From sequence record LR756502.1: a stretch of DNA of 64,000 nucleotides. One strand, 5' to 3'. How positions within the stretch are numbered: position 1 is the first letter of the stretch; each line of letters opens with the position of its first letter. Both the position numbers and the translations under genes were made by a program. The notes beneath the pieces are model-generated. The model was not told the origin of the DNA and ran no database searches. It saw nothing but the letters and a program-made list of their open reading frames with translations. Of this stretch, positions 11,369-63,615 are shown piece after piece.

Positions 11369-11435
11369 TTATATAGTATTAGTTTTTACAAAAATACGAA
11401 ATATATTTCAAACTCCAAAATTTAATATATAATGA

Positions 11436-11657
11436 ATGAAATATCTAAGAAAATTTAATGAGAGAAGAGAAGAAGAAGATGAAGAATATGTTGTTCCTGA
11501 TAAAGGACCAAATAGTCAAGATGTTAGTCACTGGGAAGTAGTTAGAAAAGATGGATATACATACTTAAAAGTATCAACCGATGACGATACCTATTATACA
11601 AAGATGATAAATCAGGAAAAATTTGATAGACCTAGATATGATTCCGGTGAGCAGTAA
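11436..11657 (+). CDS. Small protein with N-terminal capsid-targeting-like peptide
   Basis: MKYLRKFNE; TAATATATA at 11423. Confidence 0.7.
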   Translation: MKYLRKFNERREEEDEEYVVPDKGPNSQDVSHWEVVRKDGYTYLKVSTDDDTYYTKMINQEKFDRPRYDSGEQ

Positions 11658-11672
11658 ACTATTAATAAGACT

Positions 11673-12628
11673 ATGAAATTCATAAAGCTATTTGAATCAT
11701 TTAATAAGAAGGGTATTAAGGAGACATGTGAAGATATTTTACTTGAGCTACGAGATGTTGGATTTGAATCCGTTGTTTATACAGATGTAATTGATTTTGA
11801 TCAAAAAATTATTCCTAATGCAATTGCTGTATCTATTGGATATGAAGCAACTCCATTTAATTATGATGATATAAAAGAAGTAGTGAATAGACTATTTGAC
11901 TATCTAGAAAATGAAGGATACTCTCTACAATATACCCAATAAGAGCATCAGCAAAGAGACTTGTTTATCCTGTTGGTGATATACAGAAACTTGATGGTAG
12001 AGAGATATTGGGTATATACTTTATATTTAATAAAACTGAAGGTATAAATGAAGAGTGGTCTAAAAATGATCCAATCCCTGAACTTAATAAGAAGGATAAG
12101 CTGGGTATAATATTGCTTGGTGCTCCTGGTATAGGTAAGAGTACATTTGTTGATAATTTTATTATACCAAGAAATATGAGTATAAAGAAGTTTTCTACTG
12201 ATGATGTATCTCTTAAATTCTCAAAGAATCCAAATATATATCATCAATCATCATCCGATATAAATATTAATAGACTTAGAAGATTTATTTCAAGCGGTCA
12301 ATCATTTATATATGATACTACCGGTACACAAGAAAATAATATTATAGATATAAATACTATTGCAAAGGACAATGGATATACTATAATATTTATACATTTA
12401 ATTGGTCCACTTGATGTTGCTATAAAACAAAACTTGGGTAGAGAAAGAAATGTACCAGAGGATTATATAAGACTTGCTTATGATAAGCAGTTTGGTAATA
12501 TGAGTAAGTATTCAAGTGAATTAAATCCAAATGCCTATTACATTGTTCAGAATAAGGATGGTAAGTACAAATTTAGTAAGTATGAATCAGGTAATATTCT
12601 TAAAAGAAAGGTTAGTAGATATATCTAA
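11673..12628 (+). pseudogene. Frameshifted gene: tag + paralogous domain (11673..11942) fused to a P-loop kinase (AAA_33/zeta-toxin-like, 12008..12628)
   Basis: Downstream frame is open from 11915. Adding one C at 11935-11937 gives QYTPIRASAKRLVYP...IYFIFNKTEGINEE, continuous into GAPGIGKST. Confidence 0.65.
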
Positions 12629-13146
12629 CAGAACTCAACACATCCATTATTCGATGCTATTTTAAAAGCTTTCAAGAAGTCTTCATATAAACTAAACCAA
12701 TCATTAGCTTTATGAGATATTGAGTATTCTTTAGCCATATCCTTATATAACAAGAAGTTTTGGTATAATTTATAGGACATTTCTGGACCTATAATACCCT
12801 CGCAATCTGAGAAACATATTAGTTCAATGAATGGTTCTGTTGATGTCTTATGATCAAGTATATTATTTATAGCTAAATCCCTTGTAGTGCTCTCAAATAA
12901 AATATCTAATGCAGGATACCCCATCATCTCACATAAAATTGATCTCCATCTACTATAACTTGAATAAGAACCAGCTCTAAATATAAAATATTCACCATTG
13001 TGTGTGTAATACCCATTGAGTCCAGATGATTGATTAAATAGGATATCATTTGGTAATAAGTTTACACAGTTGTGAATGTTGTAACACTCTTCTGTTTGTA
13101 TCTTACACTTTTCAAGTCCATTAAATGCTCTTATGTCTAATCCCAT
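12625..13146 (-). CDS. Hypothetical protein with internal RDLAINNIL motif
   Basis: FRAGSYSSYSRWR and FSDCEGIIGP blocks. Confidence 0.7.
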   Translation of the reverse strand: MGLDIRAFNGLEKCKIQTEECYNIHNCVNLLPNDILFNQSSGLNGYYTHNGEYFIFRAGSYSSYSRWRSILCEMMGYPALDILFESTTRDLAINNILDHKTSTEPFIELICFSDCEGIIGPEMSYKLYQNFLLYKDMAKEYSISHKANDWFSLYEDFLKAFKIASNNGCVEFC

Positions 13147-13255
13147 GTAGTATTTTATTAATTTTCCTTCTTCTCTTGACCGCCCTTCTTTCCCCAGCCA
13201 ATTTCCTTCGGATATACTTAATATTATCAGACAAATGAATTTTGTCGTTAATCAT
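13121..13255 (-). CDS. 44-aa basic protein with RRRKINKIL motif (not in ORF track)
   Basis: MINDKIHLSDNIKYIRRKLAGERRAVKRRRKINKILHGIRHKSI*; start overlaps the upstream stop. Confidence 0.45.
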   Translation of the reverse strand: MINDKIHLSDNIKYIRRKLAGERRAVKRRRKINKILHGIRHKSI

Positions 13256-13592
13256 ATAAGTATTTTTCGTATTTTTCTTCATCTGATAGATCTATCTCCA
13301 TTGTTACATTTTTACTTGGAGTAGTAAATGATACCTTTATTGTTGTCATATAATCAGAGTCTATGTTATCAAGTACTTTAGCAAGCATTATCTCTCTTTC
13401 TTCATCTTTATCAACTTCTATGCCAAAATCTATAGATAAGTTTACCTTCCACGGTAGTCTTCTTTTTATAAATGTATTAACTGATAGTGTGTATATGCCT
13501 TTTTGTCTAACCCTGCCTTTGAAGGTAAATAGTGCAAATATTATAACTCTTGTTATGTATTGGTGGTTTACTTCTGATATATCTAGTTTCAT
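13248..13592 (-). CDS. Hypothetical protein
   Basis: Operon position. Confidence 0.6.
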   Translation of the reverse strand: MKLDISEVNHQYITRVIIFALFTFKGRVRQKGIYTLSVNTFIKRRLPWKVNLSIDFGIEVDKDEEREIMLAKVLDNIDSDYMTTIKVSFTTPSKNVTMEIDLSDEEKYEKYLYD

Positions 13593-13600
13593 AAGATATA

Positions 13601-13807
13601 TTACTTGAGTATGTTGTTAATCTTATCTTCTCTTTCTTCTAGTCTTTTGTATTCATCCATTGTTAGTAGATCATTATCCGAGAATGTGTCTTGATTAACC
13701 TTATCTGTTACCCATATACACTCATGTTTTTCATTTACTGAGTTAAATATAGTCATTCTATTACCACCTGTATGCTTTATAACAATATCACCTGGTTTAA
13801 ATCTCAT
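13601..13807 (-). CDS. YodC/DUF2158-like small SH3-fold protein with C-terminal REDKINNIL tag
   Basis: FKPGDIVIKHTGGNRMTI...CIWV. Confidence 0.6.
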   Translation of the reverse strand: MRFKPGDIVIKHTGGNRMTIFNSVNEKHECIWVTDKVNQDTFSDNDLLTMDEYKRLEEREDKINNILK

Positions 13808-13853
13808 AGATAAGATATTTTTCTTATACCTATCTATTAATTTTTACAAAGTC

Positions 13854-14252: not shown

Positions 14253-14262
14253 TTCAATTTAT

Positions 14263-15539: not shown

Positions 15540-15604
15540 AATTATTAATTGTTTTTCTATTATATGATAAAAAAATAACAAAGTTGCTTTTAATATATAC
15601 TTTT

Positions 15605-16009
15605 ATGAAACATATTAGATCAGTTAATGAGTTTTTTGACTTCCTAAGAGGCGATGATGAGCAAGATAAAATATCTTTAGAGTTTATTAAAAGACTTGAA
15701 AAGGTTAAGGATGAGAACCCATATGAGATAAATAAACTGAAAGGTGATAATATTCCTGAGTATATTTCTAAACATTATGACGATGTATATGAAGTTATAT
15801 TTGATGATGTTATATTAGTATCAACAAGGTGTATTGGTCATACTTTGTTTTTTTACTGTCTATACATTGATTCTGAGGAAGTTGATTGTAAAAAAAGATA
15901 TTCCGAAAAAATATTTAACCTAGTAGAAAGGATACATAAGTCTAATGTTAAAAGAATAAAATTAGATAAACTAAGATCTAATATAAATCCAGCAGCCGAT
16001 AGACTATGA
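15605..16009 (+). CDS. Tagged protein, NPAADxL family paralog 1
   Basis: MKHIRSVNEFF...NINPAADRL; TAATATATA at 15591. Confidence 0.75.
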   Translation: MKHIRSVNEFFDFLRGDDEQDKISLEFIKRLEKVKDENPYEINKLKGDNIPEYISKHYDDVYEVIFDDVILVSTRCIGHTLFFYCLYIDSEEVDCKKRYSEKIFNLVERIHKSNVKRIKLDKLRSNINPAADRL

Positions 16010-16464
16010 AACATATTAAATCAGTAAATGAATTCTTTAATTTCTTCAAAAAAGATGAAGAAGATGAGTTAGCTTTGGAGTTCATTAAAAGGATAAAGAA
16101 GGTTAAGGGAATATGTCCGTATGAGATAAGTAAGCTAACTCCAGAAGATGTACTATCACACTACAATACAAACGATTTAACGAATAATCAAGTTGACTAT
16201 GTTAGAAAATATAGTCAGTCATATAAAATAGTATTTGATGATGTTGTGTTAGTAACAACATTGATAGCTAGGAAGAGTGGTGGATTAGCGGGATTAGAGG
16301 AGGATATTTACTTTCTCAGAATAGATGGTGAGAAGATTAATTGTAGAGAGAGCTATAGAAAAAAAATATTTGAACTTACAAAGTCAATATTTGCTAATAC
16401 ACAAAGACTTAAGATAGTTAGTAAGGTTAGATCTAATATGAATACAGCAGCAGACTTATTATGA
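16006..16464 (+). CDS. Tagged protein, NPAADxL family paralog 2
   Basis: MKHIKSVNEFF...NMNTAADLL. Confidence 0.75.
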   Translation: MKHIKSVNEFFNFFKKDEEDELALEFIKRIKKVKGICPYEISKLTPEDVLSHYNTNDLTNNQVDYVRKYSQSYKIVFDDVVLVTTLIARKSGGLAGLEEDIYFLRIDGEKINCRESYRKKIFELTKSIFANTQRLKIVSKVRSNMNTAADLL

Positions 16465-16871
16465 AATACTTAAAAAAATTTGAGGGTTATGACAAATCAC
16501 TTGTTGAAAGATTTGGTATGTCAGATATAGTAGAGTATATCTTTGATATATGTCGTGATTTAGAAGATGATGGGTTTGTGGTTACTATTGGTGGGTTTTC
16601 TATGTATGATGCGGATGGGAAACTTAAATATCTTACAACCCATCGACCCGGAGGTGATCCAGTAAAAAAATTCTTTATGATTATATACAAGTTCAATTAT
16701 GGTGTTGGTGACTTTGTAGTTAACAAAGAATTAACATCTACTTTAAGAAGATTAAGAGATTATATGGATTCAGTTGGGTATTCAACTAACTTGGATTACC
16801 CTGACGGTAATCTGAATCTGGGAACAAAAGATGTGGGAACTAGTCAGATGGTTCATTTTATTAGGAAGTGA
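16461..16871 (+). CDS. Tagged protein, DLxDxG(F/Y)...RLxxY family
   Basis: MKYLKKFE; DICRDLEDDGF...RRLRDYMDSVGY. Confidence 0.7.
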   Translation: MKYLKKFEGYDKSLVERFGMSDIVEYIFDICRDLEDDGFVVTIGGFSMYDADGKLKYLTTHRPGGDPVKKFFMIIYKFNYGVGDFVVNKELTSTLRRLRDYMDSVGYSTNLDYPDGNLNLGTKDVGTSQMVHFIRK

Positions 16872-16933
16872 TTAACTGAGTCTATTAGCTAGTGAATTAC
16901 TAGCTATCGACACTGTTAGATCCACTGCCTTAC

Positions 16934-22448: not shown

Positions 22449-22925
22449 GCTTTTTCTTTACTCTCTGCAATTATTACCAACCCACCTCCTGAGTGGTAGT
22501 TATCCAGATTCACCTGGACTAAAAGGATTGTGCATCATTGAAACTTTCTTAGATGCTAACGTCGAAAGATTCGCAAGGGTTCGGCCTGTTCTAAGTCATT
22601 ACTCGATACATTGAACTCATATCGTTATATCTTCTCTATTAAAAAAGTTGGTTATGTAGGAACAGTTTATAACGATTCTCATACTGCAGTTATTCAAACA
22701 TCTGATTACGCTTATATCGAAAATAACAGAGTAATCGATAAGGCAATAAGATTGTTATACGCTAATTATTTACCTGACTTAAATAGTTTTAATCCTAAAT
22801 TTTTATCTGATTTATTTGGCATCTTTTTAGATATTTATGTTATTAAACAAATATATGGAACTTTTTTGATTCTGACAAACTTTTTCCCCGTGTAAATCTT
22901 ATTAGAATGTTTTAATATATAGTTT

Positions 22926-23384
22926 ATGAAAAACATCAAAACATACGAAGATTTCGTTAATGAAGAAATCAATTGGAAAGGAGTAGTAGCTGGTGCTATG
23001 TCTTTGCTTGCAACCGCATGTTCAAATGTTCAAATACATGATAAGTCAGGTAAAGAAATATCAACCGATAATTATAATGCTGATGGTATTGTACAAAGTA
23101 TCTACACCTCGAAAGGTACAACAAGATCGTATGGTCGTGGTTTAATGCGAAATTATCCAGATGAAATTACTGGATATAAATATACAATTCTTGATAATAA
23201 TGGTAATCAAATAGTTGTTGGTCTAAAAGATGATCTAATTTCTACCGGGGATAGTGTCACTGTTTCTATTGAAAATGGAAATATTGAACTAATTATGAAG
23301 GAAGAAGATTGTAAAGATCCAAGTAAATGTTCACCATTACCAAATGGGAAAGAAGGAGTCAATATAACTAAATATCATTTTTAA
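22926..23384 (+). CDS. Tagged protein with hydrophobic lipobox-like segment after the tag
   Basis: MKNIKTYEDFVNEE-INWKGVVAGAMSLLATAC; TAATATATA at 22913. Confidence 0.7.
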   Translation: MKNIKTYEDFVNEEINWKGVVAGAMSLLATACSNVQIHDKSGKEISTDNYNADGIVQSIYTSKGTTRSYGRGLMRNYPDEITGYKYTILDNNGNQIVVGLKDDLISTGDSVTVSIENGNIELIMKEEDCKDPSKCSPLPNGKEGVNITKYHF

Positions 23385-23637: not shown

Positions 23638-23651
23638 TATCTTATTATTTG

Positions 23652-23725
23652 TAGCCCCTGCCGGATTTGAACCGGCGACCCACAGATTATGAGTCTGTCG
23701 CTCTAACCAACTGAGCTAAGGGGCT
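23652..23725 (-). tRNA. tRNA with CAT anticodon, probably Ile2 rather than Met; no encoded CCA
   Basis: AGCCCCT/AGGGGCT acceptor stem, TAGCTCAGTTGGTTAGAGC, loop CTCATAA, GGTTCAAATCC; resembles bacterial tRNA-Ile2. Confidence 0.9.
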
Positions 23726-24285: not shown

Positions 24286-24307
24286 GTGAGTGAGTGAGTG
24301 AGTGTAG

Positions 24308-24381
24308 TGATCCCGTCCGGGATCAAACCGGAAACCTTTGGTTTAGAAAACCAACGCTCTATTCAGTTGAGCTACGGAACC
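24308..24381 (-). tRNA. tRNA-Arg(TCT); no encoded CCA
   Basis: GGTTCCG/CGGGATC acceptor, TTGGT-TTTCTAA-ACCAA anticodon arm, slightly variant T loop. Confidence 0.9.
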
Positions 24382-26774: not shown

Positions 26775-26867
26775 ATTATTCAAATATAAGGATATATATT
26801 AGATTTTCCTACTTTGTTTTATCTTTTTTTATTTTTTGTGTAAATGGATAAGTAATATATAGTTGTA

Positions 26868-27362
26868 ATGAAACACTTAAAGTCATATAACGAAGGATTG
26901 CTAGATTATTTTAAGAAAAATACTCCAGATGATAAACTCACATTGAGTATGATTAATCGCCTTGAAAAAATTAAAGATAATAATCCTTATTATATTGGTG
27001 GGATAATGGATGGTGTTGGTGAATTGCCAACGTGGATAAGCTATTATAAGGGCGTAAATGATAGAGAATTTTATAGTATAATCTATTTGGTTAGATTTGA
27101 TGATGTTGATATTCTGGTAACCAATGATAGACATAACTTAGTTAATGAAACTGGGGAACATGTTAGGCAAGAGTTGTGTGAGCATCCTTGGAAGTTATTT
27201 ATTGGATCAAATTCAAATGAATTGTGTGAAAAGATAAAGTCTAGAGAGTCGTATCGTATTAAACTATTTAAATTAGTTGATAAAATCTACAAAAGTGATA
27301 TTGAGAGGGATAGAATTGAAAGAATATCTAATGAGATTAACCCAGCGGCTGATTTATTATAA
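26868..27362 (+). CDS. Tagged protein, NPAADxL family paralog 3
   Basis: MKHLKSYNE...NEINPAADLL; TAATATATA at 26853. Confidence 0.75.
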   Translation: MKHLKSYNEGLLDYFKKNTPDDKLTLSMINRLEKIKDNNPYYIGGIMDGVGELPTWISYYKGVNDREFYSIIYLVRFDDVDILVTNDRHNLVNETGEHVRQELCEHPWKLFIGSNSNELCEKIKSRESYRIKLFKLVDKIYKSDIERDRIERISNEINPAADLL

Positions 27363-32517: not shown

Positions 32518-32931
32518 TTACCAATCAATATTGATTGTATAACTTCCAGCCTCAATTAATCCTTTATTATATAAATCGTTTGCAACAGTTTGTAAATCTG
32601 GGTAAAAGTTTCTACGCCAAAATAAATCTAGATAGTTTTTATCTGATTTACTTCCATTCCATTCATTAGGATCTCTTTTCAACCAAACGTCAAATTTGAC
32701 TCCCATCTCATTCCCATTTATAACCTCTGGTATACTATCATTCATTTCCTCATCATCTGTCCATTCTTCGGGAATACTAATATGAACAACTCCTCTTGAT
32801 TGACAACCTCTTTGCTGTTGAAAACTATATGGTTTATTATAGGTTTCTCTTACTAATCTGTCCCAGTCTTGTACTTGAACAACTCTTTCAGTTTTGAATT
32901 TTAGCATTTCAAATGTTTTTAAGTGTTTCAC
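32518..32931 (-). CDS. Tagged protein (GTG start)
   Basis: MKHLKTFE. Confidence 0.7.
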   Translation of the reverse strand: MKHLKTFEMLKFKTERVVQVQDWDRLVRETYNKPYSFQQQRGCQSRGVVHISIPEEWTDDEEMNDSIPEVINGNEMGVKFDVWLKRDPNEWNGSKSDKNYLDLFWRRNFYPDLQTVANDLYNKGLIEAGSYTINIDW

Positions 32932-33119
32932 AAAAGTACGATTTTATTTTTAATATAAAAAATTTGAGTCATTGTTCTTTCTGTTTGTATTCTTCCCTAT
33001 TAAAGTGTGTACTTTATAAGAGTCCATTTGCCCTTCTTAGCCTCATTTAATTCCATATCTTGGAACCTAGATATCTTCATAATATTAAAAAAATATTTTC
33101 TTTATATATTAATTTTTAC

Positions 33120-33431: not shown

Positions 33432-33500
33432 AGCATTATATATAATTAAATGGTTATCATAATTTGATTGTTGGTTAAAACTTTTAATATATAAAGGACT

Positions 33501-34472
33501 ATGAAACACCTAATTAAGTTCGAGGGTATTGATGATGTTAGTAAACTAACTGGTTGGGTAAATGTCAAAATTGACCACCAGTTGTTTATTAGAATGTCAA
33601 GGTATGTATTAGCCTTAGATACACTATGTGATCGACCAAGTGATAAGTACAATCTATTTATTAAGATTGATATGTTGTCAAATATTGAATCCTATATTAA
33701 TAATGTAGATGTTGATATACAAACTAAGATATCTATTATTACCTTACTACAATACCTAAATGAGATAAAAACTAAATTTAACCCATCATCTGCTGGATTT
33801 TTATTAGAGAGCTTCTTAGCATGTCTAATACATGGTGAGGTAATTCCTGGATATGAAGAAGCTGATATAACCTCATCTTATAGTGAGCTTGATGCTGTTC
33901 AATTTAAAACATCATCATCCAGAGGAATTAAGAAGTTGAATTATCAGATAAAGCTATATAAAAGTGGTGGTAATATTAAAATAAAGTGGAAGGAACTTTG
34001 TGACTATTATGTTATATGCTTAAAAAATTCAAATAATACAATAGACGTGCATATTCTATCAAAAGATCCTAATGATGCTGATAGTTATATAGGTAAATTT
34101 GCTGTTAATATTATAAAATCCGTAAAACCTAATGATTTTATAAGAGATGCTGGTAGAGAAACTCAGTATATTCTATTAAACACTAAGAAGCTTTATACCG
34201 AAGGAAGGGCACATGAACATAAGAGAACATTGGATATAAAAGATGATACGATTAATGGTCTAATACTAGCTTGTGGTAATAGTGTTAAGAACTCAATAGA
34301 GAAGGTGTATAATAATCTTTCCGAACTTCATTACAATGTTGATTCACTTGTTAGTGGCCTTGATAAGAATAAGGTTAAGATTAGTCCGGATAGAGCTAAG
34401 AAGAATGCTGATATAACACTTAGGAAAATATCAAATGATGTATCAAATCTAAAAAGAGATATATCTAGATAG
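33501..34472 (+). CDS. Tagged protein, possibly PD-(D/E)XK-like fold
   Basis: MKHLIKFE; GFLLESFL...ADI...YQIKLY spacing weakly resembles E..D..(Q)xK. Confidence 0.55.
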   Translation: MKHLIKFEGIDDVSKLTGWVNVKIDHQLFIRMSRYVLALDTLCDRPSDKYNLFIKIDMLSNIESYINNVDVDIQTKISIITLLQYLNEIKTKFNPSSAGFLLESFLACLIHGEVIPGYEEADITSSYSELDAVQFKTSSSRGIKKLNYQIKLYKSGGNIKIKWKELCDYYVICLKNSNNTIDVHILSKDPNDADSYIGKFAVNIIKSVKPNDFIRDAGRETQYILLNTKKLYTEGRAHEHKRTLDIKDDTINGLILACGNSVKNSIEKVYNNLSELHYNVDSLVSGLDKNKVKISPDRAKKNADITLRKISNDVSNLKRDISR

Positions 34473-34502
34473 TGATGATTTTATAAATTAATATATAGTT
34501 CT

Positions 34503-35231
34503 ATGAAATACTTAAAGATATTTGAGGCCAAGGTCAAAAAAGACTGGGAAAAAATGGTTGTTAATATAGAAGATGACTTTAGAAATTTAATAAATGCTAG
34601 CACTGATATTACATTAGACTATATCAAAGACATATCGGCATCAGCTTTAGATGTATTCAGTGGGGAAAAAACTGAATATGACCAATATTTATGGCTTGAG
34701 TTTAATGAGGAGACATATGTTTTTATGAGTAAAGATGGTAAGGTTGATGATGCTGAATTTGGAGAGGCTGATAAATCTATGTATAAAGACGCTGTTAGTT
34801 TCTATAAAGATCTAATAACAACAAAAGAAGATGTTTGTTTGATAATTACAGTTGATGTCTATTTTAACCTTGGTGTATCTGAAGATGATCCTAAGGTCAT
34901 ATCATTAAAGGAAGAAATAAAGGATATAGAAAGTAGATGTGAGGGAGAGGGAATTTTATTTATACCACATTTGCGTATGTCCAAATCCGATACTCTTCAG
35001 CGCCCACATAAGGGTCGTGAGAAAGATGAAATAAGTCTTCTTTCTTTTGGATTTGAGTTTAGAATAAAGCTTGATACATCAAAAATGACATATGACTATC
35101 ATAATATAATATCATCAGATGTTATATCTGATTTTGATAAATTTATAAGTATGTATAAAATACCAAAAGAAGGAGAGGATGATCTAGTTAAATTGATAAG
35201 CAAATCCTTAATTGCCTCGAAGAAGAAATAA
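34503..35231 (+). CDS. Tagged protein
   Basis: MKYLKIFE; TAATATATA at 34489. Confidence 0.7.
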   Translation: MKYLKIFEAKVKKDWEKMVVNIEDDFRNLINASTDITLDYIKDISASALDVFSGEKTEYDQYLWLEFNEETYVFMSKDGKVDDAEFGEADKSMYKDAVSFYKDLITTKEDVCLIITVDVYFNLGVSEDDPKVISLKEEIKDIESRCEGEGILFIPHLRMSKSDTLQRPHKGREKDEISLLSFGFEFRIKLDTSKMTYDYHNIISSDVISDFDKFISMYKIPKEGEDDLVKLISKSLIASKKK

Positions 35232-35237
35232 TAATTT

Positions 35238-35777
35238 ATGAAGAACTTAGAAACATATGAATCGTTTTTCAAAAACTTAAAAAATCTTTTCAAAAAAGAT
35301 GCTACTCATTCGTTTGGAGCATTTTACAAAAACCTAAAATATGGTAAGGTAACTCCAGATGAACCACATCCTGTAGATGATGAGAGGTATATGACAAAAG
35401 AAAGAAAAAACGAAATAACAGATACAATTGTAGATTGTCTTCAAGATATATTTGATGAATATAGTATATATAACTCAAATGGTAAAAAATGGCACAACGT
35501 GATGATGTGGTCTTATATAAATTGTGAATCGTCTAGAGTGGGTATTGAAATATATAATATTAGACAAATGTCATATGATAATTTATTAGATGATATAACT
35601 GATAAAAAGGATATGTTGGAAAGTATGTGTGGTGTCAAAGTTAGAATAGATGATTGGGGTGGTGGATTTGAATATGGTGAAAAAGATTCAGATGCTACAA
35701 TACAAATAACTTTTCCTTTCCATGAACAATCCTCATATGATGTTCAGAAAGAAAGAGCAAAAATGGGATGGAAATGA
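35238..35777 (+). CDS. Tagged protein
   Basis: MKNLETYESFF. Confidence 0.7.
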   Translation: MKNLETYESFFKNLKNLFKKDATHSFGAFYKNLKYGKVTPDEPHPVDDERYMTKERKNEITDTIVDCLQDIFDEYSIYNSNGKKWHNVMMWSYINCESSRVGIEIYNIRQMSYDNLLDDITDKKDMLESMCGVKVRIDDWGGGFEYGEKDSDATIQITFPFHEQSSYDVQKERAKMGWK

Positions 35778-36265
35778 AATACATAAGAAAGTTTAATGAG
35801 TCTTTTAAACCAATGTTGGATAGTAATAGTATAGGTGATATATTATTGGATGTAATTGATATTGGATATAGATGTCATGTCGGGACAGATTGGTGGTGGG
35901 ATGGTAAGAATAGCATTAATATTACAATATATGGCATAGAAGAGTTCAATAAAGATATTCACTGCAATGTTGATTATATTTATATTGATGATGTTGTTGA
36001 ATCGGTGAATAGATTATTCAAATACTTGAAATCAGAAGGATATGAACCAAGTGAAATTAGTAGTAAAGTTGCGGAAGTAATTAATAAAGGTCCTGATGAT
36101 CTTGATCTCATTAAGAAAAATGGGCGAAACAGGGGAGAAATTAGAATATTAACTGGTGAGGTATATAGTGATGGATCCAAAAGTGGGTTAAATTTTAAAA
36201 AGGACAAGGAAAAGAATAAGTGGAAAACAGATGATTTACCCGCATTTCGATTCACTCAAAAATAG
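35774..36265 (+). CDS. Tagged protein, DLxDxG(F/Y)...RLxxY family
   Basis: MKYIRKFNES; DILLDVIDIGY...VNRLFKYLKSEGY. Confidence 0.7.
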   Translation: MKYIRKFNESFKPMLDSNSIGDILLDVIDIGYRCHVGTDWWWDGKNSINITIYGIEEFNKDIHCNVDYIYIDDVVESVNRLFKYLKSEGYEPSEISSKVAEVINKGPDDLDLIKKNGRNRGEIRILTGEVYSDGSKSGLNFKKDKEKNKWKTDDLPAFRFTQK

Positions 36266-36275: not shown

Positions 36276-36734
36276 ATGAAATACTTAAAGGGATATAAAT
36301 TATTAAATGAAAGTGAATCTTTGGATGAGGTTGCTCAATCAATAACTGATAGACTAGTTGACCTAAAGGATCTTGGTGCTAATATATACATAGGTACTTG
36401 GCAATGGAATGATCTAAATGGGTATATTGAAATTATTAATAACGATAATGATATTGATAAAAGGGTATACTGTGTCCGTATTGATATAACCACTTATGAT
36501 AAATATTCAAAAGTACAATCAGCATATGTTTATGATGATGACTGTGATAGAGATGGTGATAAGGTGTCTGAGGTTAATGTTGAATCGATTCACAAGTCTG
36601 CTAAAGTGCTAGGTGAGGTGGCTAACTTCATTTCAATGGCTAAGGGAGAAGGTTGGCTATTATTTATGGATGATTCAGATATATCATCAAAAAGCATAAG
36701 AATTAATTTCTTTATTATACCAAATAAAAACTAA
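36276..36734 (+). CDS. Tagged protein
   Basis: Start at 36276, MKYLKGYKLLNES; DRLVDLKDLG. Confidence 0.7.
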   Translation: MKYLKGYKLLNESESLDEVAQSITDRLVDLKDLGANIYIGTWQWNDLNGYIEIINNDNDIDKRVYCVRIDITTYDKYSKVQSAYVYDDDCDRDGDKVSEVNVESIHKSAKVLGEVANFISMAKGEGWLLFMDDSDISSKSIRINFFIIPNKN

Positions 36735-39868: not shown

Positions 39869-41053
39869 TCAATTTATTATTAGTTGTTTAAATTTTTCTA
39901 TTTCTAATCTCTTTATTTCATCACCCAAAGGCTTACCCTTTAATCCTTGATTCATTAATTCTTGAGCAGAAGTTGTTGGTCTGTATTTGACAAAAGAAAT
40001 ACATTCCTTACCCAAACCAGCAATTGATATCCACTCTTCAATAGACTCATCACTTATTCTGAATGAGTTTCTTTTTGCGTGGTACTCAGCAACCATTTCT
40101 GGTGTGAAATCTTTTAACCAAAGCATAAATGTCACCTCACGAGCAATCGGATGTGCTGCCGTATTTGGAATATTACATTCTTGTATCAATCTATCAACCA
40201 TATCTGAGAACTCAGTAACCTTCTCATCTATAAATAAATTGGATAAGTATAATATCAGTGAACTACACTTAACAATGTTATGATTTATCTTCATACCTGG
40301 AAAAATATATTCCCAAATATCAAATTTGTCAATATATTTCAAGTATAAACTAAAGTCTTTTACTTGTCCGTAAGCCTTGAAGAACTCTTCCCATATACGA
40401 TTCTTTACAATAATTTTCAATTGATCCTTGTTCTTATGAACAGACTTTAATGTTCCTTCTTCAATAGTGTAATCATATCTAGCGGTAAATCTTAAAAGTC
40501 TTAGAATTCTTAAAGGATCTTCCTTAATTCTCATATCTGGGTCACCTACAAATCTTGTTATACCGTTTCTAAGATCCTCCAGTCCATTTACTAAGTCAAT
40601 AATCTTTCTTTGTTCCAAGTCATAGAATAGAGCATTCCATGTTAAGTCACGTCTCTCAACGTCCTTCTCGATTGTGGAAAATTTAGTGGTAGGATTTCTT
40701 GATATACCTAACATATCACCATAAATATCCTCTCTAAAAGTAGCAACCTCCATACCTAATGGTTGATCTTCTGTATAAACAACAACAACGAAGAATGATT
40801 CTCCTTGTACAGTTGTTCTCCATTTCTTACCAATGATTGATAATACCTCATCTGGTGTGGCATCTGTGGCTAAGTCAAAATCTTTTGGCTTATCGTTGTT
40901 TAAAAAATCCCTTACAGAACCACCAACAACGAATAGTTTTTTACCAGCTGATTTAAAAAGAGTATGTAACTCCTTAACGGACTCTGGGATTATATCCCAC
41001 ATATCTTTTGTTTGAATTGATTCCAAGAATTTAGCGTATTTAGTTATTATCAT
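39869..41053 (-). CDS. cca: CCA tRNA nucleotidyltransferase / poly(A) polymerase family
   Basis: VGGSVRD, KDFDLATDA, EVATFRED, RRDLTWNAL, EDPLRILRLLRF. CCA versus poly(A) activity not resolved. Confidence 0.85.
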   Translation of the reverse strand: MIITKYAKFLESIQTKDMWDIIPESVKELHTLFKSAGKKLFVVGGSVRDFLNNDKPKDFDLATDATPDEVLSIIGKKWRTTVQGESFFVVVVYTEDQPLGMEVATFREDIYGDMLGISRNPTTKFSTIEKDVERRDLTWNALFYDLEQRKIIDLVNGLEDLRNGITRFVGDPDMRIKEDPLRILRLLRFTARYDYTIEEGTLKSVHKNKDQLKIIVKNRIWEEFFKAYGQVKDFSLYLKYIDKFDIWEYIFPGMKINHNIVKCSSLILYLSNLFIDEKVTEFSDMVDRLIQECNIPNTAAHPIAREVTFMLWLKDFTPEMVAEYHAKRNSFRISDESIEEWISIAGLGKECISFVKYRPTTSAQELMNQGLKGKPLGDEIKRLEIEKFKQLIIN

Positions 41054-41073: not shown

Positions 41074-41883
41074 TTATAAAATCTCTTTAAATAGGTGATT
41101 TGTTCGTGTTCTATTTACAGCTGAGGCAAAATGATCCATATCTAGTCCAAATTCACTTGACAGGCCAGATATATTACAAACCTCAGACTCTATCTGATCA
41201 TGCAGTGTGCCTCCGAGACCCGTTGGGTAATCACTTCCTTTAAAAATATCAAATAGCAATTTTTTAAATCTACCAGCTGAATTTCTATCGGCTATTGTAA
41301 CTCTTCCATATTCTTCATCTTGATCCATATCGATGCTACCGATAGTTATTTTATCACCGTCTGTACAAATTGGAAAGTATATCCAATTAGTATAGAATCC
41401 ACCATAGAAATCATCAAATCCAATATTATTTTCCTTAAACTTATTAAGGCAATTATTTAATGATTCCTCATTGACTGGTATAATACAAAGTGAGAAACTA
41501 AGATTTGTATCTATATTAGATTCTATATCGAATGACCCATCATTGTCTTTGTATTCATGTAAATTATCTAAAAACATACTAGGCTCGAAGTTTATCTTCA
41601 CATAGAATTCATCTGTTAGTATATTTAGTATATGTTGTCCATCCTTTGATTTTTTGGTTATATTAAATCTAAATTTACCATATTTTGAATAATTATTAAT
41701 ATTTTTTTTCCAACTACTAATGCCTTTTTCATGAGTATCTATCTTCTCTTGCTCCTCCTTCTTTATTATAAAATCATCAATATTCTTTGACCTTCTAACA
41801 TGACCGAGTGCCTTAAGCTTCGTAGATGCACTTTTATATGTATATTTATTTAATTCCTCGTTAAATCTTTTTAAGTGTTTCAT
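41074..41883 (-). CDS. Tagged protein, tandem paralog A
   Basis: MKHLKRFNEELN; similar along its length to 41895..42668. Confidence 0.75.
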   Translation of the reverse strand: MKHLKRFNEELNKYTYKSASTKLKALGHVRRSKNIDDFIIKKEEQEKIDTHEKGISSWKKNINNYSKYGKFRFNITKKSKDGQHILNILTDEFYVKINFEPSMFLDNLHEYKDNDGSFDIESNIDTNLSFSLCIIPVNEESLNNCLNKFKENNIGFDDFYGGFYTNWIYFPICTDGDKITIGSIDMDQDEEYGRVTIADRNSAGRFKKLLFDIFKGSDYPTGLGGTLHDQIESEVCNISGLSSEFGLDMDHFASAVNRTRTNHLFKEIL

Positions 41884-41894: not shown

Positions 41895-42668
41895 TTATTC
41901 TATATATCCTGGAAAGTCACCAACATGTGTTTTATTTATGTAGTCAGCAAGATCTTTTAATTCAAATCCATAATCACCAGACATTCCAGCCTCAGCAAGT
42001 ATAACACTTTCAAGATATTCATGCATATCAGGTATGTTTGTCATTGAGCTTGGGTATCTTACCTCATTCATTAATATTGATTTTAGTAAATTTCTAACCT
42101 TCATTGCACTTCTTCTATCTGCGAATTTACAGATACCAGTTAGATTTGGATCGTATTCATCATGACGTGATCCAGTGAACTCAATTCTACCATTTACTAT
42201 TTTGATACCAAATCCAAGAAAACCAGCCCAGTATGATCCATTACCAAACTCTGCACAAGGAAGTATTTCTTCAAGCTTAGCAATTTGTTCTTCACTTGTA
42301 GGTACTATTGTGTACATAAATGGGAAACTATTTGATACTTCAAAGTTATCTTTATCCTTTGCCTTTTGTTTCTCAAACAAAAAGTTATCCAAGAATCCAA
42401 GTTCTTCAAATATAAATTCAATATAGAAGTCGTCAGTAGTTAATACTTCACCATTTTCATCTGATATTTGTATTTTGAATGTTCCGAACTTCTTAACCTC
42501 TTCTACATTCTTTCTCCACTTTTCTAGATTCTCTTTGTTTTCAACCTTACCACTCCATTCAGATAAAGCACTTGCTCTTTTCTGCATCCCCTTCTTAGCC
42601 AATTTACGTGAGGCGCTCATATAAGTAGATGAGTCTAATTCCTCGTTAAATCTTTTTAAGTGTTTCAT
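41895..42668 (-). CDS. Tagged protein, tandem paralog B
   Basis: MKHLKRFNEELD; TAATATATA at 42674. Confidence 0.75.
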   Translation of the reverse strand: MKHLKRFNEELDSSTYMSASRKLAKKGMQKRASALSEWSGKVENKENLEKWRKNVEEVKKFGTFKIQISDENGEVLTTDDFYIEFIFEELGFLDNFLFEKQKAKDKDNFEVSNSFPFMYTIVPTSEEQIAKLEEILPCAEFGNGSYWAGFLGFGIKIVNGRIEFTGSRHDEYDPNLTGICKFADRRSAMKVRNLLKSILMNEVRYPSSMTNIPDMHEYLESVILAEAGMSGDYGFELKDLADYINKTHVGDFPGYIE

Positions 42669-42701
42669 GTCTTTATATATTAAAAAAATAATATATAACT
42701 G

Positions 42702-42941
42702 ATGAAATGGATAAAATTATTTGAGGACTTTAAGGTTAAAAATATAACACAGGAAGATATTATAAATTGTATAAAAAAGGGTGGAGTTATATATGCGACA
42801 ATTATTAAGAATCTACCTGATAATGATCCAAAAGAACCATTGAAACCAGTAAGTATAGATGAGGATGGTCTTGTAACAATTGAGTATGGTGGTAGAGAAT
42901 ACGAAATAGATATTAAAGATGTTGAAAAAGTTGAAGACTAA
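42702..42941 (+). CDS. Small tagged protein
   Basis: MKWIKLFEDF; TAATATATA at 42689. Confidence 0.7.
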   Translation: MKWIKLFEDFKVKNITQEDIINCIKKGGVIYATIIKNLPDNDPKEPLKPVSIDEDGLVTIEYGGREYEIDIKDVEKVED

Positions 42942-44322
42942 ATATATTGATTTCATAAGTGAGTCATTATATACAAAGGACATTGATTTACTATTAAAGG
43001 ATATTTCAAAAAATAGTCCAGTTGCTTCACTATTGTCTTTTCTTTCACATAGCGATATATACAAGGATGAGAATACGGTTAACTTCTTGTCGTTATCTAA
43101 TACGATTAATACACTTAATTATATCCCAACTAATAGAAGGGGTTTAACTAACAATACAATCTGGGACTCTACTGGTCTGGTTGAGATGAGAATAGGTAGG
43201 GTTGTTAAGAAGATACTATCAGATATTGATAAGTCTAAATTTACCTTTACCTACAAGGGTAAGATTTCATATGAAAATGGCACCTTTTGGAATGGCCGTA
43301 TTTCGAGTCCTGTAATATCATTCTCAAATAATTTAACCGGTGATGATTTTGCAAAAATGATTGAATCTGATGATAATCCTCCAATATCTAACGATGCTGT
43401 TGGTGTGAATACATATGTTAATATTAAATTAACTGGTGAGAATGTACTATCTGATGATGGATTTATAAAAACTCCGAATAGGTCATATAACTTAAAAATA
43501 GATAAATTCTATGATATGTGTTATAAAAATACTTGGTCTAGTTCTGATGTGTATTTTAAAATGACTTTATCTGATAAGCTAGAAATAGATGACGGTGTTT
43601 ACGAATGTGAGTTGGTATTTTCAACAAAATTCTGCGGAAAGGAAATAGATGAGATTAATGATGCTGAGATTGAAAAGTTTGTTAATACTATGTCTGCTGA
43701 GATAAAAATGCTTAGGTCTAGCGATGACTCTAAAATAGAAGTTGTTAATGGTGAAGATATTAGAAAGTGGTATAATTCCGAAAACTACCAATCTAAGTAC
43801 GGCCAACTTGGATCCTCTTGTATGTCATATGCAGATTGTCAAAATTTCTTTGATATTTATACCAATAATCCCGATGTTATATCACTCTTAATTCTTAAAA
43901 ATACAGAAGGTAAGTTGATTGGTAGAGCATTACTTTGGAAGCTAATTGGTGGTGAGTTTTTCATGGATAGAGTATATTGTGCGACTGAGTATGATGAGAT
44001 AATATTTACTAAGTACGCTAAAGAAAATGGGTATTATTACCGCAAAAATGGTGGTAACTCTGATATAAAGTTCTTATTTAATGATGTTGATGTTTCTGAG
44101 ACTTTTAGTTCAAAGTTAATTGCTAACCTATCAACTGGTGGTGTGGACTTTGATTATTATCCATATCTTGATACATTGAAAAGGTTGGATCTTAATAAGA
44201 AAATGCTTTTCTATAGAGGTAATACTAATCTTCGTGAAGATAAAGAGCTTACCGATACCGAGGGTAGATGGGCTAATTATGATGATGGTGATGATTATAA
44301 CGACTATGACGATGACTATTAG
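42919..44322 (+). CDS. SCM...GRALLW...MDRVY...YPYLDT family protein, paralog of 8096..9520, with tag-like KYIDFISES
   Basis: Shared motif blocks. Confidence 0.75.
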   Translation: MLKKLKTKYIDFISESLYTKDIDLLLKDISKNSPVASLLSFLSHSDIYKDENTVNFLSLSNTINTLNYIPTNRRGLTNNTIWDSTGLVEMRIGRVVKKILSDIDKSKFTFTYKGKISYENGTFWNGRISSPVISFSNNLTGDDFAKMIESDDNPPISNDAVGVNTYVNIKLTGENVLSDDGFIKTPNRSYNLKIDKFYDMCYKNTWSSSDVYFKMTLSDKLEIDDGVYECELVFSTKFCGKEIDEINDAEIEKFVNTMSAEIKMLRSSDDSKIEVVNGEDIRKWYNSENYQSKYGQLGSSCMSYADCQNFFDIYTNNPDVISLLILKNTEGKLIGRALLWKLIGGEFFMDRVYCATEYDEIIFTKYAKENGYYYRKNGGNSDIKFLFNDVDVSETFSSKLIANLSTGGVDFDYYPYLDTLKRLDLNKKMLFYRGNTNLREDKELTDTEGRWANYDDGDDYNDYDDDY

Positions 44323-60054: not shown

Positions 60055-60071
60055 TTTATTAATTTTTTTTA

Positions 60072-60305: not shown

Positions 60306-60325
60306 ATATAAGGAAAATATCTGTA

Positions 60326-60937
60326 TTATACTAAAATTTTATCTAATTTAATTTGCCTATCATCTGCAATTATCTCACTCAATATATCGGATCCAAAGTA
60401 ATCAATAAGTATTTTTTTGTGTTTTAATATACTATTTTCTTCTATATGCTTATCTAGGTCTGGTTGATTAGATTTAATATACTCCAACCATTCTTCTTTA
60501 GAATTAATGTCAGCTACTGGTGGTGTCCAATGGTTTTTATCAACAAATGATTTATTCCAACTTGGATATCCAGAGTGGTGAAATCCATTAGTTTCAGTTT
60601 CCATGACAATATTTAGGTGAGTATTGCTTCTAATATTCAATACTTCTTTATTTTCATATATCATCTTATACAAAGTTCTACCAACACCAACTATATATAT
60701 CTCACCATTTATATAAATATTAAAGAAGTATCTAGTGACACAACTTAGTTTTGGGTGTTTTACGTTAATTTCACTGTTTAATATTCTCCTCAAATATTTT
60801 TTATTAGTATCATCATATATTCTATAATTACCACAGAAAGTAAAATCGTATTCCTTGCACCAGGTAATATTATTATTGTTATCAACAAATGGTAGTATCT
60901 TTATGATGTCTCCATTTTCTAATTTGTGTATTTTCAT
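60326..60937 (-). CDS. Hypothetical protein, possibly gp32-like ssDNA-binding fold; C-terminal RQIKLDKIL tag
   Basis: IKILPF...YFFNIYI...VGRTLYKMI...YPSWNKS loosely follows gp32-like motif order. Confidence 0.45.
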   Translation of the reverse strand: MKIHKLENGDIIKILPFVDNNNNITWCKEYDFTFCGNYRIYDDTNKKYLRRILNSEINVKHPKLSCVTRYFFNIYINGEIYIVGVGRTLYKMIYENKEVLNIRSNTHLNIVMETETNGFHHSGYPSWNKSFVDKNHWTPPVADINSKEEWLEYIKSNQPDLDKHIEENSILKHKKILIDYFGSDILSEIIADDRQIKLDKILV

Positions 60938-61842
60938 TAAAGTCCTAATTGATCTAACTTTTCATTTCTTTTAATATCGACCGTTTTAATCTCTATCTCA
61001 TTATTTGGATATGAAACTCCCTCTGATGATTCTATGGTTCTTGGTCCAGTCCTACTGACAGTACCTATTACTATACTGCCATACTTTGAGTTATAAACAA
61101 ATCTATCACCGACACTAGCAGTTGTTCCGCATTTGCATGGAATTGGAGATGGTGGTTTTAGTCTTTTATAAACCCACTTACCATCGATTATACCATTCGG
61201 TCCATTTTCAAATACTCTCAGTTTGCTTTTTAATTCAACTAATTTATCCTTGATTATCATTTCGCCTTTTGTTGTTATACTTGATGCGACAAGTAGGTAA
61301 TCAGCGATTCCTTTATAATTATCAATATTATTAGCAGATACGCCAGATGCAATCGCCATTGGATGGATGCCTAGATATTCTCGAATTAGTTTTATCTTTT
61401 CAACATCAGCCGCCTTTCCTGTACCAACTCCACTAGTTGTTGCTACATCTGTAGCTATTGATGCCTCTTCACAAGAAAACTTTAAATCTTTTGGTTGTGG
61501 TTGATATTTGAATGCTAATCCGCCAAAGAACATTCCTTTGAAGAATCTAACTTCTTTAGCTCTCTCAGGAGTTATTGTAGCATCACACCAAAGACCATCA
61601 AGTCCATTTATAGACTCTGTTGATAGTGCATGTTCAGTTGACTCACCAAGCATATTAACACCAACCCAAAGAGTTGGGAATTCAGATTTAACTCTAAATG
61701 CACAGTTTAGTAAATCAAACTTAGATACAGCGTGATTTATTAGAAATACCTTTTCAATTCCACACTCAATACAAGTTTTAACATTAGTTATAACTTGATT
61801 CTCATTAATCATGTGAATTACTGGAATAATTTCTGTCTTCAT
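60937..61842 (-). CDS. BtpA/SgcQ-family TIM-barrel protein with appended SH3-like domain and RNEKLDQLGL tag
   Basis: PVIHM, VGVNML, VATTSGVGTG, IASGVS, LLVASS. Confidence 0.7.
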   Translation of the reverse strand: MKTEIIPVIHMINENQVITNVKTCIECGIEKVFLINHAVSKFDLLNCAFRVKSEFPTLWVGVNMLGESTEHALSTESINGLDGLWCDATITPERAKEVRFFKGMFFGGLAFKYQPQPKDLKFSCEEASIATDVATTSGVGTGKAADVEKIKLIREYLGIHPMAIASGVSANNIDNYKGIADYLLVASSITTKGEMIIKDKLVELKSKLRVFENGPNGIIDGKWVYKRLKPPSPIPCKCGTTASVGDRFVYNSKYGSIVIGTVSRTGPRTIESSEGVSYPNNEIEIKTVDIKRNEKLDQLGL

Positions 61843-61970
61843 TATTTAGATTTTTTCTTATTTCTATCTTGCCAAATTACTAGTAATCCACTACCCACTA
61901 TTACAATGGGTACGAATATTGCGATTTTTAATTCAATTAAACTCATTTTTATTTATTTTTTAGTATATTT

Positions 61971-62423
61971 TTAATAGCAATCCTTACCAAAGCAATCATT
62001 ATCAATTGCTAATTGCTTTGTTCTGTATCTCCAAACTTCCTCAACTGTATCACCACAGATTGTTACCTTGTAGGTAACTATGAATGTTTTAGTTGATGAT
62101 TCACTTTTGTAATACTTGAAACCACCATCTATTCTTACTCCACCACCAACAAAAACTGAATCCACAGAAGACCACCTTACTTTACTCATAAATCCAAGTG
62201 GTATAGTATCTTTAATTTTGTACTTACCAGTTGAATCTCTAATTATATTTGTACAAATAAGTGAGTGTATTAGGTCAAACTCCTTTGTGTGATAGTCTGA
62301 AGTCCCATTTTCATAAGATGTTATTCCATCCACTACTTGTATGTGTGTGAAATCAATATTACTCGAATTATGACATGATGTGATAGATATAACAATAGCA
62401 ATAAATAATAATACTTTTTTCAT
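61971..62423 (-). CDS. Putative lipoprotein
   Basis: MKKVLLFIAIVISITSC lipobox. Confidence 0.75.
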   Translation of the reverse strand: MKKVLLFIAIVISITSCHNSSNIDFTHIQVVDGITSYENGTSDYHTKEFDLIHSLICTNIIRDSTGKYKIKDTIPLGFMSKVRWSSVDSVFVGGGVRIDGGFKYYKSESSTKTFIVTYKVTICGDTVEEVWRYRTKQLAIDNDCFGKDCY

Positions 62424-62469
62424 TAGTTATGTTTTAGGTTTTTATTTAAACAAAGGTATAAATATTTTA

Positions 62470-62823
62470 TCAATTATCCAAATTATTTATTATAGAGTCT
62501 ATTATATCACTTCGTCTCTTTTTTATTTTGTTTGGTAGAAATATCTCAATTCCAAGGTGTCCGTTGCTCCTGTTTGGGTACTCCCTCGTATGATCCATTC
62601 TCTGAAACTTAACCTTAACACATATAGTTACGGCATTTTCAATACTACATGGTCTTTTATCACGACCAATATAATTTAATATTATGTCAATAATTTCCAC
62701 ATCAAGTCCCTTATTATGCTTTGGTGAGGATATAACTCTCATTATATCCTCAACTATTAGAGACTTATACCTCTCAGGTATAGATGTATTACCAGTATTT
62801 AATATTTCTATTTTTATAGACAT
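62470..62823 (-). CDS. Hypothetical protein, C-terminal RSDIIDSII tag variant
   Basis: ORF track. Confidence 0.6.
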   Translation of the reverse strand: MSIKIEILNTGNTSIPERYKSLIVEDIMRVISSPKHNKGLDVEIIDIILNYIGRDKRPCSIENAVTICVKVKFQRMDHTREYPNRSNGHLGIEIFLPNKIKKRRSDIIDSIINNLDN

Positions 62824-62874
62824 TCACCGAATATAGTTAATTTATTTCAAATCACAAAATAATATATATAACTA

Positions 62875-63615
62875 ATGAAATATATCAAGAAATATAAAAT
62901 TTTTGAACTTGCTGGGGACTCTTCAGTAGCAGGTAATCCTTTATATAAAAATAGAATTGATGAATCAAAGTCAGATGTATCGGATGAGAATATAATAGAA
63001 GATGTAGTATTCATTATGCAGGATATTATTGATGATTATAGAAATATAAAATTTACTTCTATCAATAGTGACCCTATTAGTGTTGATGATATTTATAATA
63101 AATCAAGCAATCTTAATAATTATAAAACAACCATTAGGACCGGTGGTGTTCTTAGAAGTAAGTTTGGTGTGGACTTCGGATTTATTGAAGGCGGGTATGA
63201 GAAATATGTAAGCATTCTTAGTGATATGATATCAGTTATTAGAAGATTAAAAGATATTGGGTGGGACATTGATAGACTTGATGATGTGTTTAGGGCGGAT
63301 GGATTTCAAATCTACTACCAGTTTACAAAGCCAGATGTTATTGTTAATGAATATAAATTTGATAAAAATGAGAAGGAAAAGCTTGAACAAGCATTTGAGG
63401 ATAGATCTTTGAGTATTGAAGAAATTGACGAGGAAGAGGGTGATTATGAGAATTGGTTGAAGATTAGATTCTCTACTCACGCATACTCTGGTGAGTTGTC
63501 TAGTTATGATGTTATGAATCGTAAATTTGAGTGGATATGTGATGTTATGGGATTTGAGTCATATGCATATGATAATGAATATTATGTTGACTTCTCATTT
63601 ATAAAATCATCTTAG
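62875..63615 (+). CDS. Tagged protein
   Basis: MKYIKKYKIFE; TAATATATA at 62860. Confidence 0.7.
   Translation: MKYIKKYKIFELAGDSSVAGNPLYKNRIDESKSDVSDENIIEDVVFIMQDIIDDYRNIKFTSINSDPISVDDIYNKSSNLNNYKTTIRTGGVLRSKFGVDFGFIEGGYEKYVSILSDMISVIRRLKDIGWDIDRLDDVFRADGFQIYYQFTKPDVIVNEYKFDKNEKEKLEQAFEDRSLSIEEIDEEEGDYENWLKIRFSTHAYSGELSSYDVMNRKFEWICDVMGFESYAYDNEYYVDFSFIKSS

Follow-up and report, generated by a model that had tools for sequence, protein, structure and literature searches.

The record LR756502.1 is the 642,428-bp genome of an uncultured phage (guanine-plus-cytosine content ~31%, no runs of N). It is among the four largest genomes in Al-Shayeb et al. 2020 and is assigned to the Mahaphage clade, the host being predicted to be one of the Bacteroidetes (PMC7162821). 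We analyzed a window of 64,000 nucleotides, identical at 100% to positions 558001-622000 of this record, in which many genes begin with variants of one short N-terminal peptide, hereafter called the leader or tag. Coordinates are window positions unless the record is named. The whole record was analyzed beside the window as separate pieces, and a crude gene call gave 974 genes.

A first-pass annotation had ascribed such N-termini to about 20 genes of the window and had read them as T4-like capsid-targeting peptides on a large payload of packaged and injected proteins, possibly with anti-defence roles. All the N-termini it quoted are present in the window. For the minus-strand genes the low ends had been quoted, the true starts being 41883, 42668 and 32931. 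We built a hidden Markov model (HMM) of the leader from strict matches and used a cut-off of 9 bits in the window and of 10 bits in the genome. In the window, 21 of the 2016 candidate start codons with at least 20 amino acids (aa) downstream reached at least 9 bits, which corresponds to 18 genes, and four weaker leader variants were found beside these.

As had been proposed, the blocks of leader genes begin behind a common motif, TAATATATA, in 9 of 10 cases in the window, and 16 of the 17 called leader genes lie within units headed by this motif. The copy at 11423..11431 (+) ends 4 nt before the ATG of a 73-aa gene (11436..11657, +; M-K-Y-L-R-K-F-N-E; 21.2 bits), and the second gene of the unit encodes an 89-aa protein of family B (11673..11942, +; M-K-F-I-K-L-F-E-S). 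Similarly, the copy at 15591..15599 (+) lies 5 nt upstream of a 134-aa family A gene (15605..16009, +; M-K-H-I-R-S-V-N-E), which is followed by two further genes recognized by the leader HMM, one of 152 aa from family A (16006..16464, +) and one of 136 aa from family B (16461..16871, +; M-K-Y-L-K-K-F-E-G). The motif at 22913..22921 (+) stands 4 nt before the ATG of a 152-aa gene with a T4-like form of the leader (22926..23384, +; M-K-N-I-K-T-Y-E-D-F-V-N-E-E; 23 bits), and the one at 26853..26861 (+) stands 6 nt before a 164-aa family A gene (26868..27362, +). At 33485..33493 (+), it precedes by 7 nt the ATG of a 323-aa gene (33501..34472, +; M-K-H-L-I-K-F-E-G) for which no relatives were detected among the leader genes. 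The copy at 34489..34497 (+), 5 nt before the ATG, is followed by four genes recognized by the leader HMM: 34503..35231 (+, 242 aa, M-K-Y-L-K-I-F-E-A), 35238..35777 (+, 179 aa, M-K-N-L-E-T-Y-E-S) and, both of family B, 35774..36265 (+, 163 aa, M-K-Y-I-R-K-F-N-E-S) and 36276..36734 (+, 152 aa, M-K-Y-L-K-G-Y-K-L-L-N-E-S). On the minus strand, two family C genes, of 257 aa (41895..42668) and 269 aa (41074..41883; M-K-H-L-K-R-F-N-E-E; leader HMM), lie behind TAATATATA at 42674..42682 (-), 5 nt before the ATG at 42668. This copy forms a divergent pair with the one at 42689..42697 (+), 4 nt before the ATG at 42702 of a 79-aa gene (42702..42941, +; M-K-W-I-K-L-F-E-D; leader HMM), and the back-to-back pair thus serves leader genes on both strands from an intergenic region of 33 nt (42669-42701). 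Finally, TAATATATA at 62860..62868 (+) is located 6 nt before the ATG of a 246-aa gene (62875..63615, +; M-K-Y-I-K-K-Y-K-I-F-E; 24.1 bits). A 137-aa gene with a GTG start (32518..32931, -; (M)-K-H-L-K-T-F-E; 17.1 bits) has no TAATATATA upstream.

The variants suspected at 39869, at 42919 and in a tiny open reading frame (ORF) proved real, and leader-like N-termini could be read in all three. The first is a CCA-adding/poly(A) polymerase family enzyme (39869..41053, -; M-I-I-T-K-Y-A-K-F-L-E-S), the second a 467-aa protein with the T4 pattern K-Y-I-D-F-I-S-E in its N-terminus (42919..44322, +; M-L-K-K-L-K-T-K-Y-I-D-F-I-S-E-S). The ORF encodes 26 aa starting with the weak variant M-K-I-S-R-F-Q-D-M-E-L-N-E (33000..33080, -) and has TAATATATA at 33103-33111 (-).

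Across the genome, 133 of 974 N-termini scored at least 10 bits, compared to 4 of 3040 control windows beginning at an internal methionine. The leader consensus is M-K-[HY]-[LI]-[KR]-x-[FY], followed by N-E, K-I-F-E or x-[ED]-F-[IV]-N-E, and it occurs as M-K-H-L-K-x-[FY]-N-E-S, M-K-H-L-K-x-Y-K-I-F-E-S and M-K-Y-I-K-x-F-E-x-F. A further variant, K-[KR]-[YW]-x-x-F-[IV]-[NK]-E, is built like the T4 tag. This fourth form is enriched 9.4-fold at N-termini and was found in 26 genes, 22 of which lie beyond the 133. The tag is carried by ~14-16% of the genes, so that the earlier count of about 20 holds for the window but not for the whole genome, where there are ~130-155. Hydrophobic residues are conserved at positions 4 (L/I) and 7 (F/Y), and a hydrophobic-x-Glu sequence ends at residues 8-14 in 103 of the 133 leaders, compared to 171 of the 841 other proteins. 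Otherwise the tag is polar and amphipathic, and a crude test found a long hydrophobic run in only one of the 133 proteins. A Sec or lipoprotein signal peptide would have a hydrophobic core in roughly its first 25 residues and was ruled out, since such a core is missing here. The tag was not found described in the searchable literature, where searches with the leader letters returned only unrelated bacteriocin papers.

The conserved signal is the peptide and not the nucleotide sequence, as judged from synonymous variation of its codons and from operon-internal genes that keep the peptide. The codons used at leader positions reflect those of the genome as a whole (37 AAA and 32 AAG for Lys5, 19 GAA and 14 GAG for Glu9, four codons for Leu4). 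Codon skew is confined to codons 2 and 3, with AAA above expectation at codon 2 and a preference for C-ending His/Tyr codons at codon 3. Furthermore, operon-internal leader genes without the promoter motif still carry the peptide. The same two observations exclude a nucleotide cassette of promoter plus start as the conserved unit. Among 17 homologues of family C, the mean column identity is 47%, yet conservation reaches at least 90% at eight positions of the leader (M1 and K5-L11). We also modeled one protein each of families A and C with AlphaFold. In the family A model (the protein of 26868..27362; predicted template modelling score 0.70), residues 1-11 have a predicted local distance difference test score (pLDDT) below 50; in the family C model (41895..42668; pLDDT 90.9), this is the case for residues 1-6. 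In both models, the tag is thus predicted to be a low-confidence tail outside the fold. A Foldseek search with the two models against PDB and BFVD gave no match at E <= 0.001.

The proteins behind the tag differ widely. After trimming of the first 14 residues, the 133 tagged proteins fell into 96-101 clusters at E < 1e-3. One family has 22-33 members; for ~90 tagged proteins, no relative was detected within the set. By sequence comparison, one tag is common to ~100 apparently unrelated protein families. The tagged proteins are small (median of 159 aa) and acidic in 71% of the cases. Pfam and PHROGs assigned no family to 16 leader proteins of the window. Genome-wide, few domains were recognized: two GNATs, a lysozyme, NUDIX, SAM methyltransferase, SET, HNH, Toprim/primase-like and cytidyltransferase domains; HAD-like, isochorismatase-like, phosphoribosyltransferase-like and HExxH proteins were seen by eye. 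Four of these enzymes, at 207650-208264 (isochorismatase/nicotinamidase-like), 60875-61393 (phosphoribosyltransferase-like), 430895-431491 and 89827-90426 (both NUDIX, one ADP-ribose pyrophosphatase-like) of LR756502.1, together hint at chemistry related to nicotinamide adenine dinucleotide (NAD). The tagged NUDIX, NAD-related, GNAT and SET domains would be compatible with host takeover, which is not a proof of it, and no tagged body matches a known anti-restriction protein, only a few of the bodies having recognizable domains. Family A (15605-16464 and 26868-27362) has a conserved C-terminal N-P-A-A-D-L-L, and its longer homologues have, beyond an [IL]-x-E, another conserved domain of ~95 residues; these may be two-part proteins that are cut.

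We then looked at the distribution of the leader outside LR756502.1. The back-translated leader matched at least 120 stretches in IMG/VR, compared to nine in bacterial and archaeal genomes totalling 596 Gb, and the tag is virus-specific. Among the IMG/VR matches listed, all lie at ORF starts; their contigs are AT-rich and reach 676 kb, and TAATATATA is often found 4-6 nt upstream of the match. Some of the nine cellular matches are on small contigs of metagenome-assembled genomes (e.g., JBBAEW010000007.1, 51,205 bp), which are probably phage contigs binned there by mistake; one of them equals a viral contig of IMG/VR in length. The tag was also found in the sampled parts of LR745206, LR756504, LR756501 and LR756500, the last having the form M-K-Y-I-K-E-Y-E-E-F-I-L-E, which is close to that of T4. 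When family C was searched against GenBank phages by tblastn, matches were limited to two huge phages.

The motif TAATATATA is a genuine, promoter-like upstream signal. It occurs 21 times in the window, compared to 6.8 +/- 2.4 times in shuffled sequences, none of 100 shuffles reaching 21. Genome-wide, of its 211 copies, 161 are followed within 40 nt by a start on the same strand, and TAATATATA-headed units hold 101 of the 133 leader genes (76%) but only 219 of the 841 others (odds ratio of 9, p = 3e-28). Upstream of the motif, no position is conserved except for a T at -1. TAATATATA also precedes portal, baseplate-hub, adaptor and tail-fibre genes. In the window, the copy at 5338..5346 (-) is upstream, at 24 nt, of a tail-fibre gene of collagen-like type (2-5313, -; more than 1770 aa, continuing beyond the window start), indicating that structural genes use the same motif as leader genes, and the copy at 6676..6684 (-) lies 21 nt before a tail-fibre-like gene (6022-6654). 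The spacing between TAATATATA and the ATG is bimodal, being 4-9 nt in 103 genes and otherwise 14-40 nt with an A-rich spacer. The long spacing is found at the portal, an adaptor and tail-fibre genes, the short one at the baseplate hub (8 nt) and at one tail-fibre gene (5 nt). Before most tagged first genes, the motif ends 4-8 nt from the ATG, and such short spacing suggests a leaderless or near-leaderless mRNA.

A second class of promoters has an extended -7 element and corresponds to the -33/-7 consensus of Bacteroidetes (PMC6847099). It was found before only 6 of the 133 leader genes. In the window, it occurs on the minus strand upstream of the starts at 9520, 11368, 20225, 24081, 31926, 50056, 57403 and 60299. 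This is in agreement with the earlier description of genes driven by sigma-A running opposite to the leader blocks, in that many minus-strand genes of the window have such a promoter and few leader genes do. Genes of this class fit transcription by the host RNA polymerase and a Bacteroidetes host, and are probably early. The promoter motifs would divide the genome into two classes, one with host-type Bacteroidetes promoters and one with the phage-specific TAATATATA.

At 222-231 kb of LR756502.1, we identified a head module consisting of a gp20-type portal (Portal_T4 in Pfam, 1e-57), a 699-aa protein and a gp23-type capsid protein (Gp23 in Pfam, 4e-28). The 699-aa protein (225272-227371 of the record) lies upstream of the capsid gene and matches phrog_207, 'head maturation protease', at 6e-28. 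By BLASTP it is 27% identical to T4 gp21 (E = 2e-4), with matching G-E-x-x-H-P and V-S-S-R-x-x-G blocks containing the catalytic His and Ser, and the protease forms its N-terminal domain. It is also 35% identical to a PTm1 protein annotated as 'prohead core scaffolding protein and protease', and its C-terminal part consists of ~12 tandem repeats of 14 residues, each with Y-S-E-Y and [IL]-A-E. These features identify it as a predicted prohead protease fused to a repeat-rich scaffold, the repeats of which could be docking sites for the tag as well as protease substrates. By phmmer, the protein had no match among PDB sequences. A 'peptidase' adjoining the capsid gene was also considered as prohead protease and was rejected, as it is an M20/peptidase-T-like enzyme. 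In IMG/VR, 261 stretches encode related capsid proteins, several of them on contigs that also have leader matches. The best 80 are 67-86% identical. In 26 of 80 related loci, the capsid gene has a leader gene no more than 6 kb away, and in 13 of these the leader gene directly follows it. In the N-terminal region of the capsid protein, V-L-E-N and I-N-E-N are invariant in 58 distinct relatives, and I-N-E-N is found in PTm1 as well. The hydrophobic-x-Glu sites of the scaffold repeats and of the capsid protein are possible protease substrates.

In T4, the first 10 residues of IPIII form the capsid-targeting sequence (CTS). Residues 4 and 7 are important for targeting, whereas processing depends on residues 8 and 10, and the site of gp21 cleavage follows L/I-x-E (PMC9026906). 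The leader resembles the CTS of IPI, IPII, IPIII and Alt in being a short M-K tag that ends in hydrophobic-x-Glu and has its key residues, hydrophobic or aromatic, three positions apart, in being common to otherwise unrelated proteins, and in occurring in a genome with gp20-, gp21- and gp23-like genes. When the N-termini of T4 ipI, ipII and ipIII (NC_000866.4) were scored with the leader HMM, they ranked 1st, 4th and 3rd of 23 T4 N-termini. The T4 ip tags have a core, K-T-[YF]-x-E-F, that can be aligned to the leader sequence K-x-[YF]-x-E-F. Closest to the T4 tag are the fourth form and, in the window, the gene at 22926 with K-T-Y-E-D-F-V-N-E. The differences concern the number of tagged genes (~130-155 here, a handful in T4) and the commonest leader forms, which have three additional residues before the T4-like core. 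Moreover, TAATATATA abuts the ATG here, the protease is fused to the scaffold, and gp55 was not found by phmmer. T4 late promoters consist of a -10-like element alone (PMC7892883), and TAATATATA is likewise -10-like, lacks a conserved upstream element and is common to tagged and structural genes. The internal-protein loci of T-even phages encode diverse defence proteins with only the CTS conserved in common (PMC3012670). The arrays described here, made of diverse, fast-evolving small proteins that are alike only at the 5' end of the gene, are similar in this respect, although on a far larger scale and in a phage with a predicted host in the phylum Bacteroidetes. phiKZ, 201phi2-1 and SPN3US also have many head-internal proteins, which are cut after Glu by a gp21-related protease, with tens of megadaltons packaged along with the DNA. 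However, their propeptides are long (often more than 100 residues), have no common N-terminal consensus and are cleaved at S/A/G-x-E, whereas the tag described here has 9-12 residues, a strong consensus and a hydrophobic P3. The tagged proteins were therefore not assigned to the phiKZ-like class of processed inner-body proteins, the tag being too short and its P3 residue hydrophobic rather than S/A/G.

On balance, we lean towards reading the leader as a propeptide for capsid targeting of the T4 type, here expanded and diversified, that would be cut after hydrophobic-x-Glu. The parts of the earlier T4-like reading accessible to sequence analysis are borne out by the T4-type head module, the CTS-like anatomy, the ranking of the T4 ip N-termini, the presence of the tag on ~100 families and the motif shared with structural genes; the similarity between the tag and that of T4 itself is weak. 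In the scheme that we propose, TAATATATA, as a phage-specific -10-like element, would drive transcription of tagged and structural genes together, presumably late. The flexible tag would dock the new protein on the scaffolding core of the prohead, i.e., the scaffold of ~12 repeats fused to the protease, and the gp21-like serine protease would then cut the tag off after hydrophobic-x-Glu. The mature protein would remain in the capsid with the DNA and would probably be delivered to the host on infection.

Several observations weigh against this interpretation. To our knowledge, 130-155 different cargo proteins would be far beyond any known phage. The scores of ipI, ipII and ipIII on the leader HMM are low (9.1, 4.2 and 4.5 bits), and matches so short and weak do not show homology. 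The P3 residue of the leader is often F/Y, while that of T4 is L/I. The protease reaches only 20 bits with Pfam Peptidase_S77, the cut-off being 27 bits. The depletion of hydrophobic-x-Glu in the tagged bodies is small (observed/expected of 0.92 compared to 1.08 in other proteins), and a control motif shifts to a similar extent in the opposite way. No leader was found in the head region of PTm1, a cultured relative, or in the first 50 kb of Lak-A1, for which the count was repeated with TAG read as a sense codon. A phmmer search with T4 gp55 and gp45 against the 974 called proteins gave no match, although gp44 matched; gp55 and gp45 diverge fast and may have escaped this search. Furthermore, the Toprim/primase-like, HAD-like, phosphoribosyltransferase-like and isochorismatase-like proteins and the CCA-adding enzyme have no obvious role in a capsid; with primase-like, CCA-adding and metabolic enzymes among the tagged proteins, it is uncertain that all of these are packaged. 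Finally, several tagged proteins have a membrane-like hydrophobic segment 15-25 residues past the tag: that of 22926-23384 in the window, whose segment has a Cys, and those of 544849-545472, 383506-384339, 79261-79800, 400000-400521 and 489926-490687 in LR756502.1. Such segments could fit membrane-active ejected proteins or could speak against packaging. One of the segment-bearing proteins is a lysozyme with a signal-anchor-like segment.

The peptide could instead be an address tag for another phage-specific process, such as delivery to a compartment or membrane, chaperone binding or timed degradation, its likeness to T4 being convergent. Modularity, disorder, virus specificity and selection at the peptide level would suit any address tag, and the enzymes expected in the cytoplasm and the membrane-like segments agree with such a role. 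However, the T4-type head module, the gp21-like protease and the hydrophobic-x-Glu end point to the capsid, as do the ranking of the T4 ip N-termini and the leader genes within head modules. We know of no such system with an N-terminal decapeptide, and we consider this explanation unlikely.

Two further explanations assign no function to the peptide itself. In one, the conserved letters would provide an optimal early coding region for mRNAs starting at or near the ATG. The proximity of TAATATATA to the ATG of most tagged first genes, the excess of AAA at codon 2 and the C-ending codons at position 3 are what such a translation feature would predict. Yet operon-internal tagged genes without the motif retain the peptide, and the tag is missing from ~60% of the TAATATATA genes with short spacing. 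Its codons vary freely between synonyms up to position 12, with the hydrophobic residues and the Glu retained, and bacterial genomes do not use it; overall, we regard this explanation as improbable. In the other, the tagged genes would be diverged copies of one ancestor and the N-terminus merely their slowest-evolving part. Tandem arrays, the family of 22-33 members and the window paralogues of families A, B and C are in line with such an origin. As an account of the tag, it is largely refuted by the unrelated domains found behind the same peptide (lysozyme, NUDIX, GNAT, SET, methyltransferase, HNH and Toprim); the ~90 tagged proteins without a detectable relative and the position of the peptide outside the predicted folds also speak against it, and we give it very little credence.

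If the tag is indeed a CTS-like propeptide, sequence only would be enough to list which proteins huge uncultured phages package and probably inject. Genome gigantism would then be accompanied by a very large protein payload, and ~100 unknown protein families would become candidates for a role in the first minutes of infection, e.g., in host takeover or counter-defence. More tentatively, and with considerable doubt, we hypothesize that the largest known phages load well over 100 different proteins via a common decapeptide and deliver this 'starter proteome' along with their DNA. It would hold acetyltransferases, NUDIX and NAD-related enzymes, a SET methyltransferase, a lysozyme, a CCA-adding enzyme and ~100 families of unknown small acidic proteins. 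In this it would resemble the protein sets of giant eukaryotic viruses. If this were true, the injected proteome of any uncultured relative could be deduced directly from its genome sequence.

Beside the leader genes, the window encodes a Dam-type methylase, collagen-like tail-fibre genes and a cluster related to translation. The latter comprises the CCA-adding enzyme (39869-41053, -), EF-G (24643-26619, -) and two tRNAs, tRNA-Met and tRNA-Arg, at 23651-23725 and 24307-24381.

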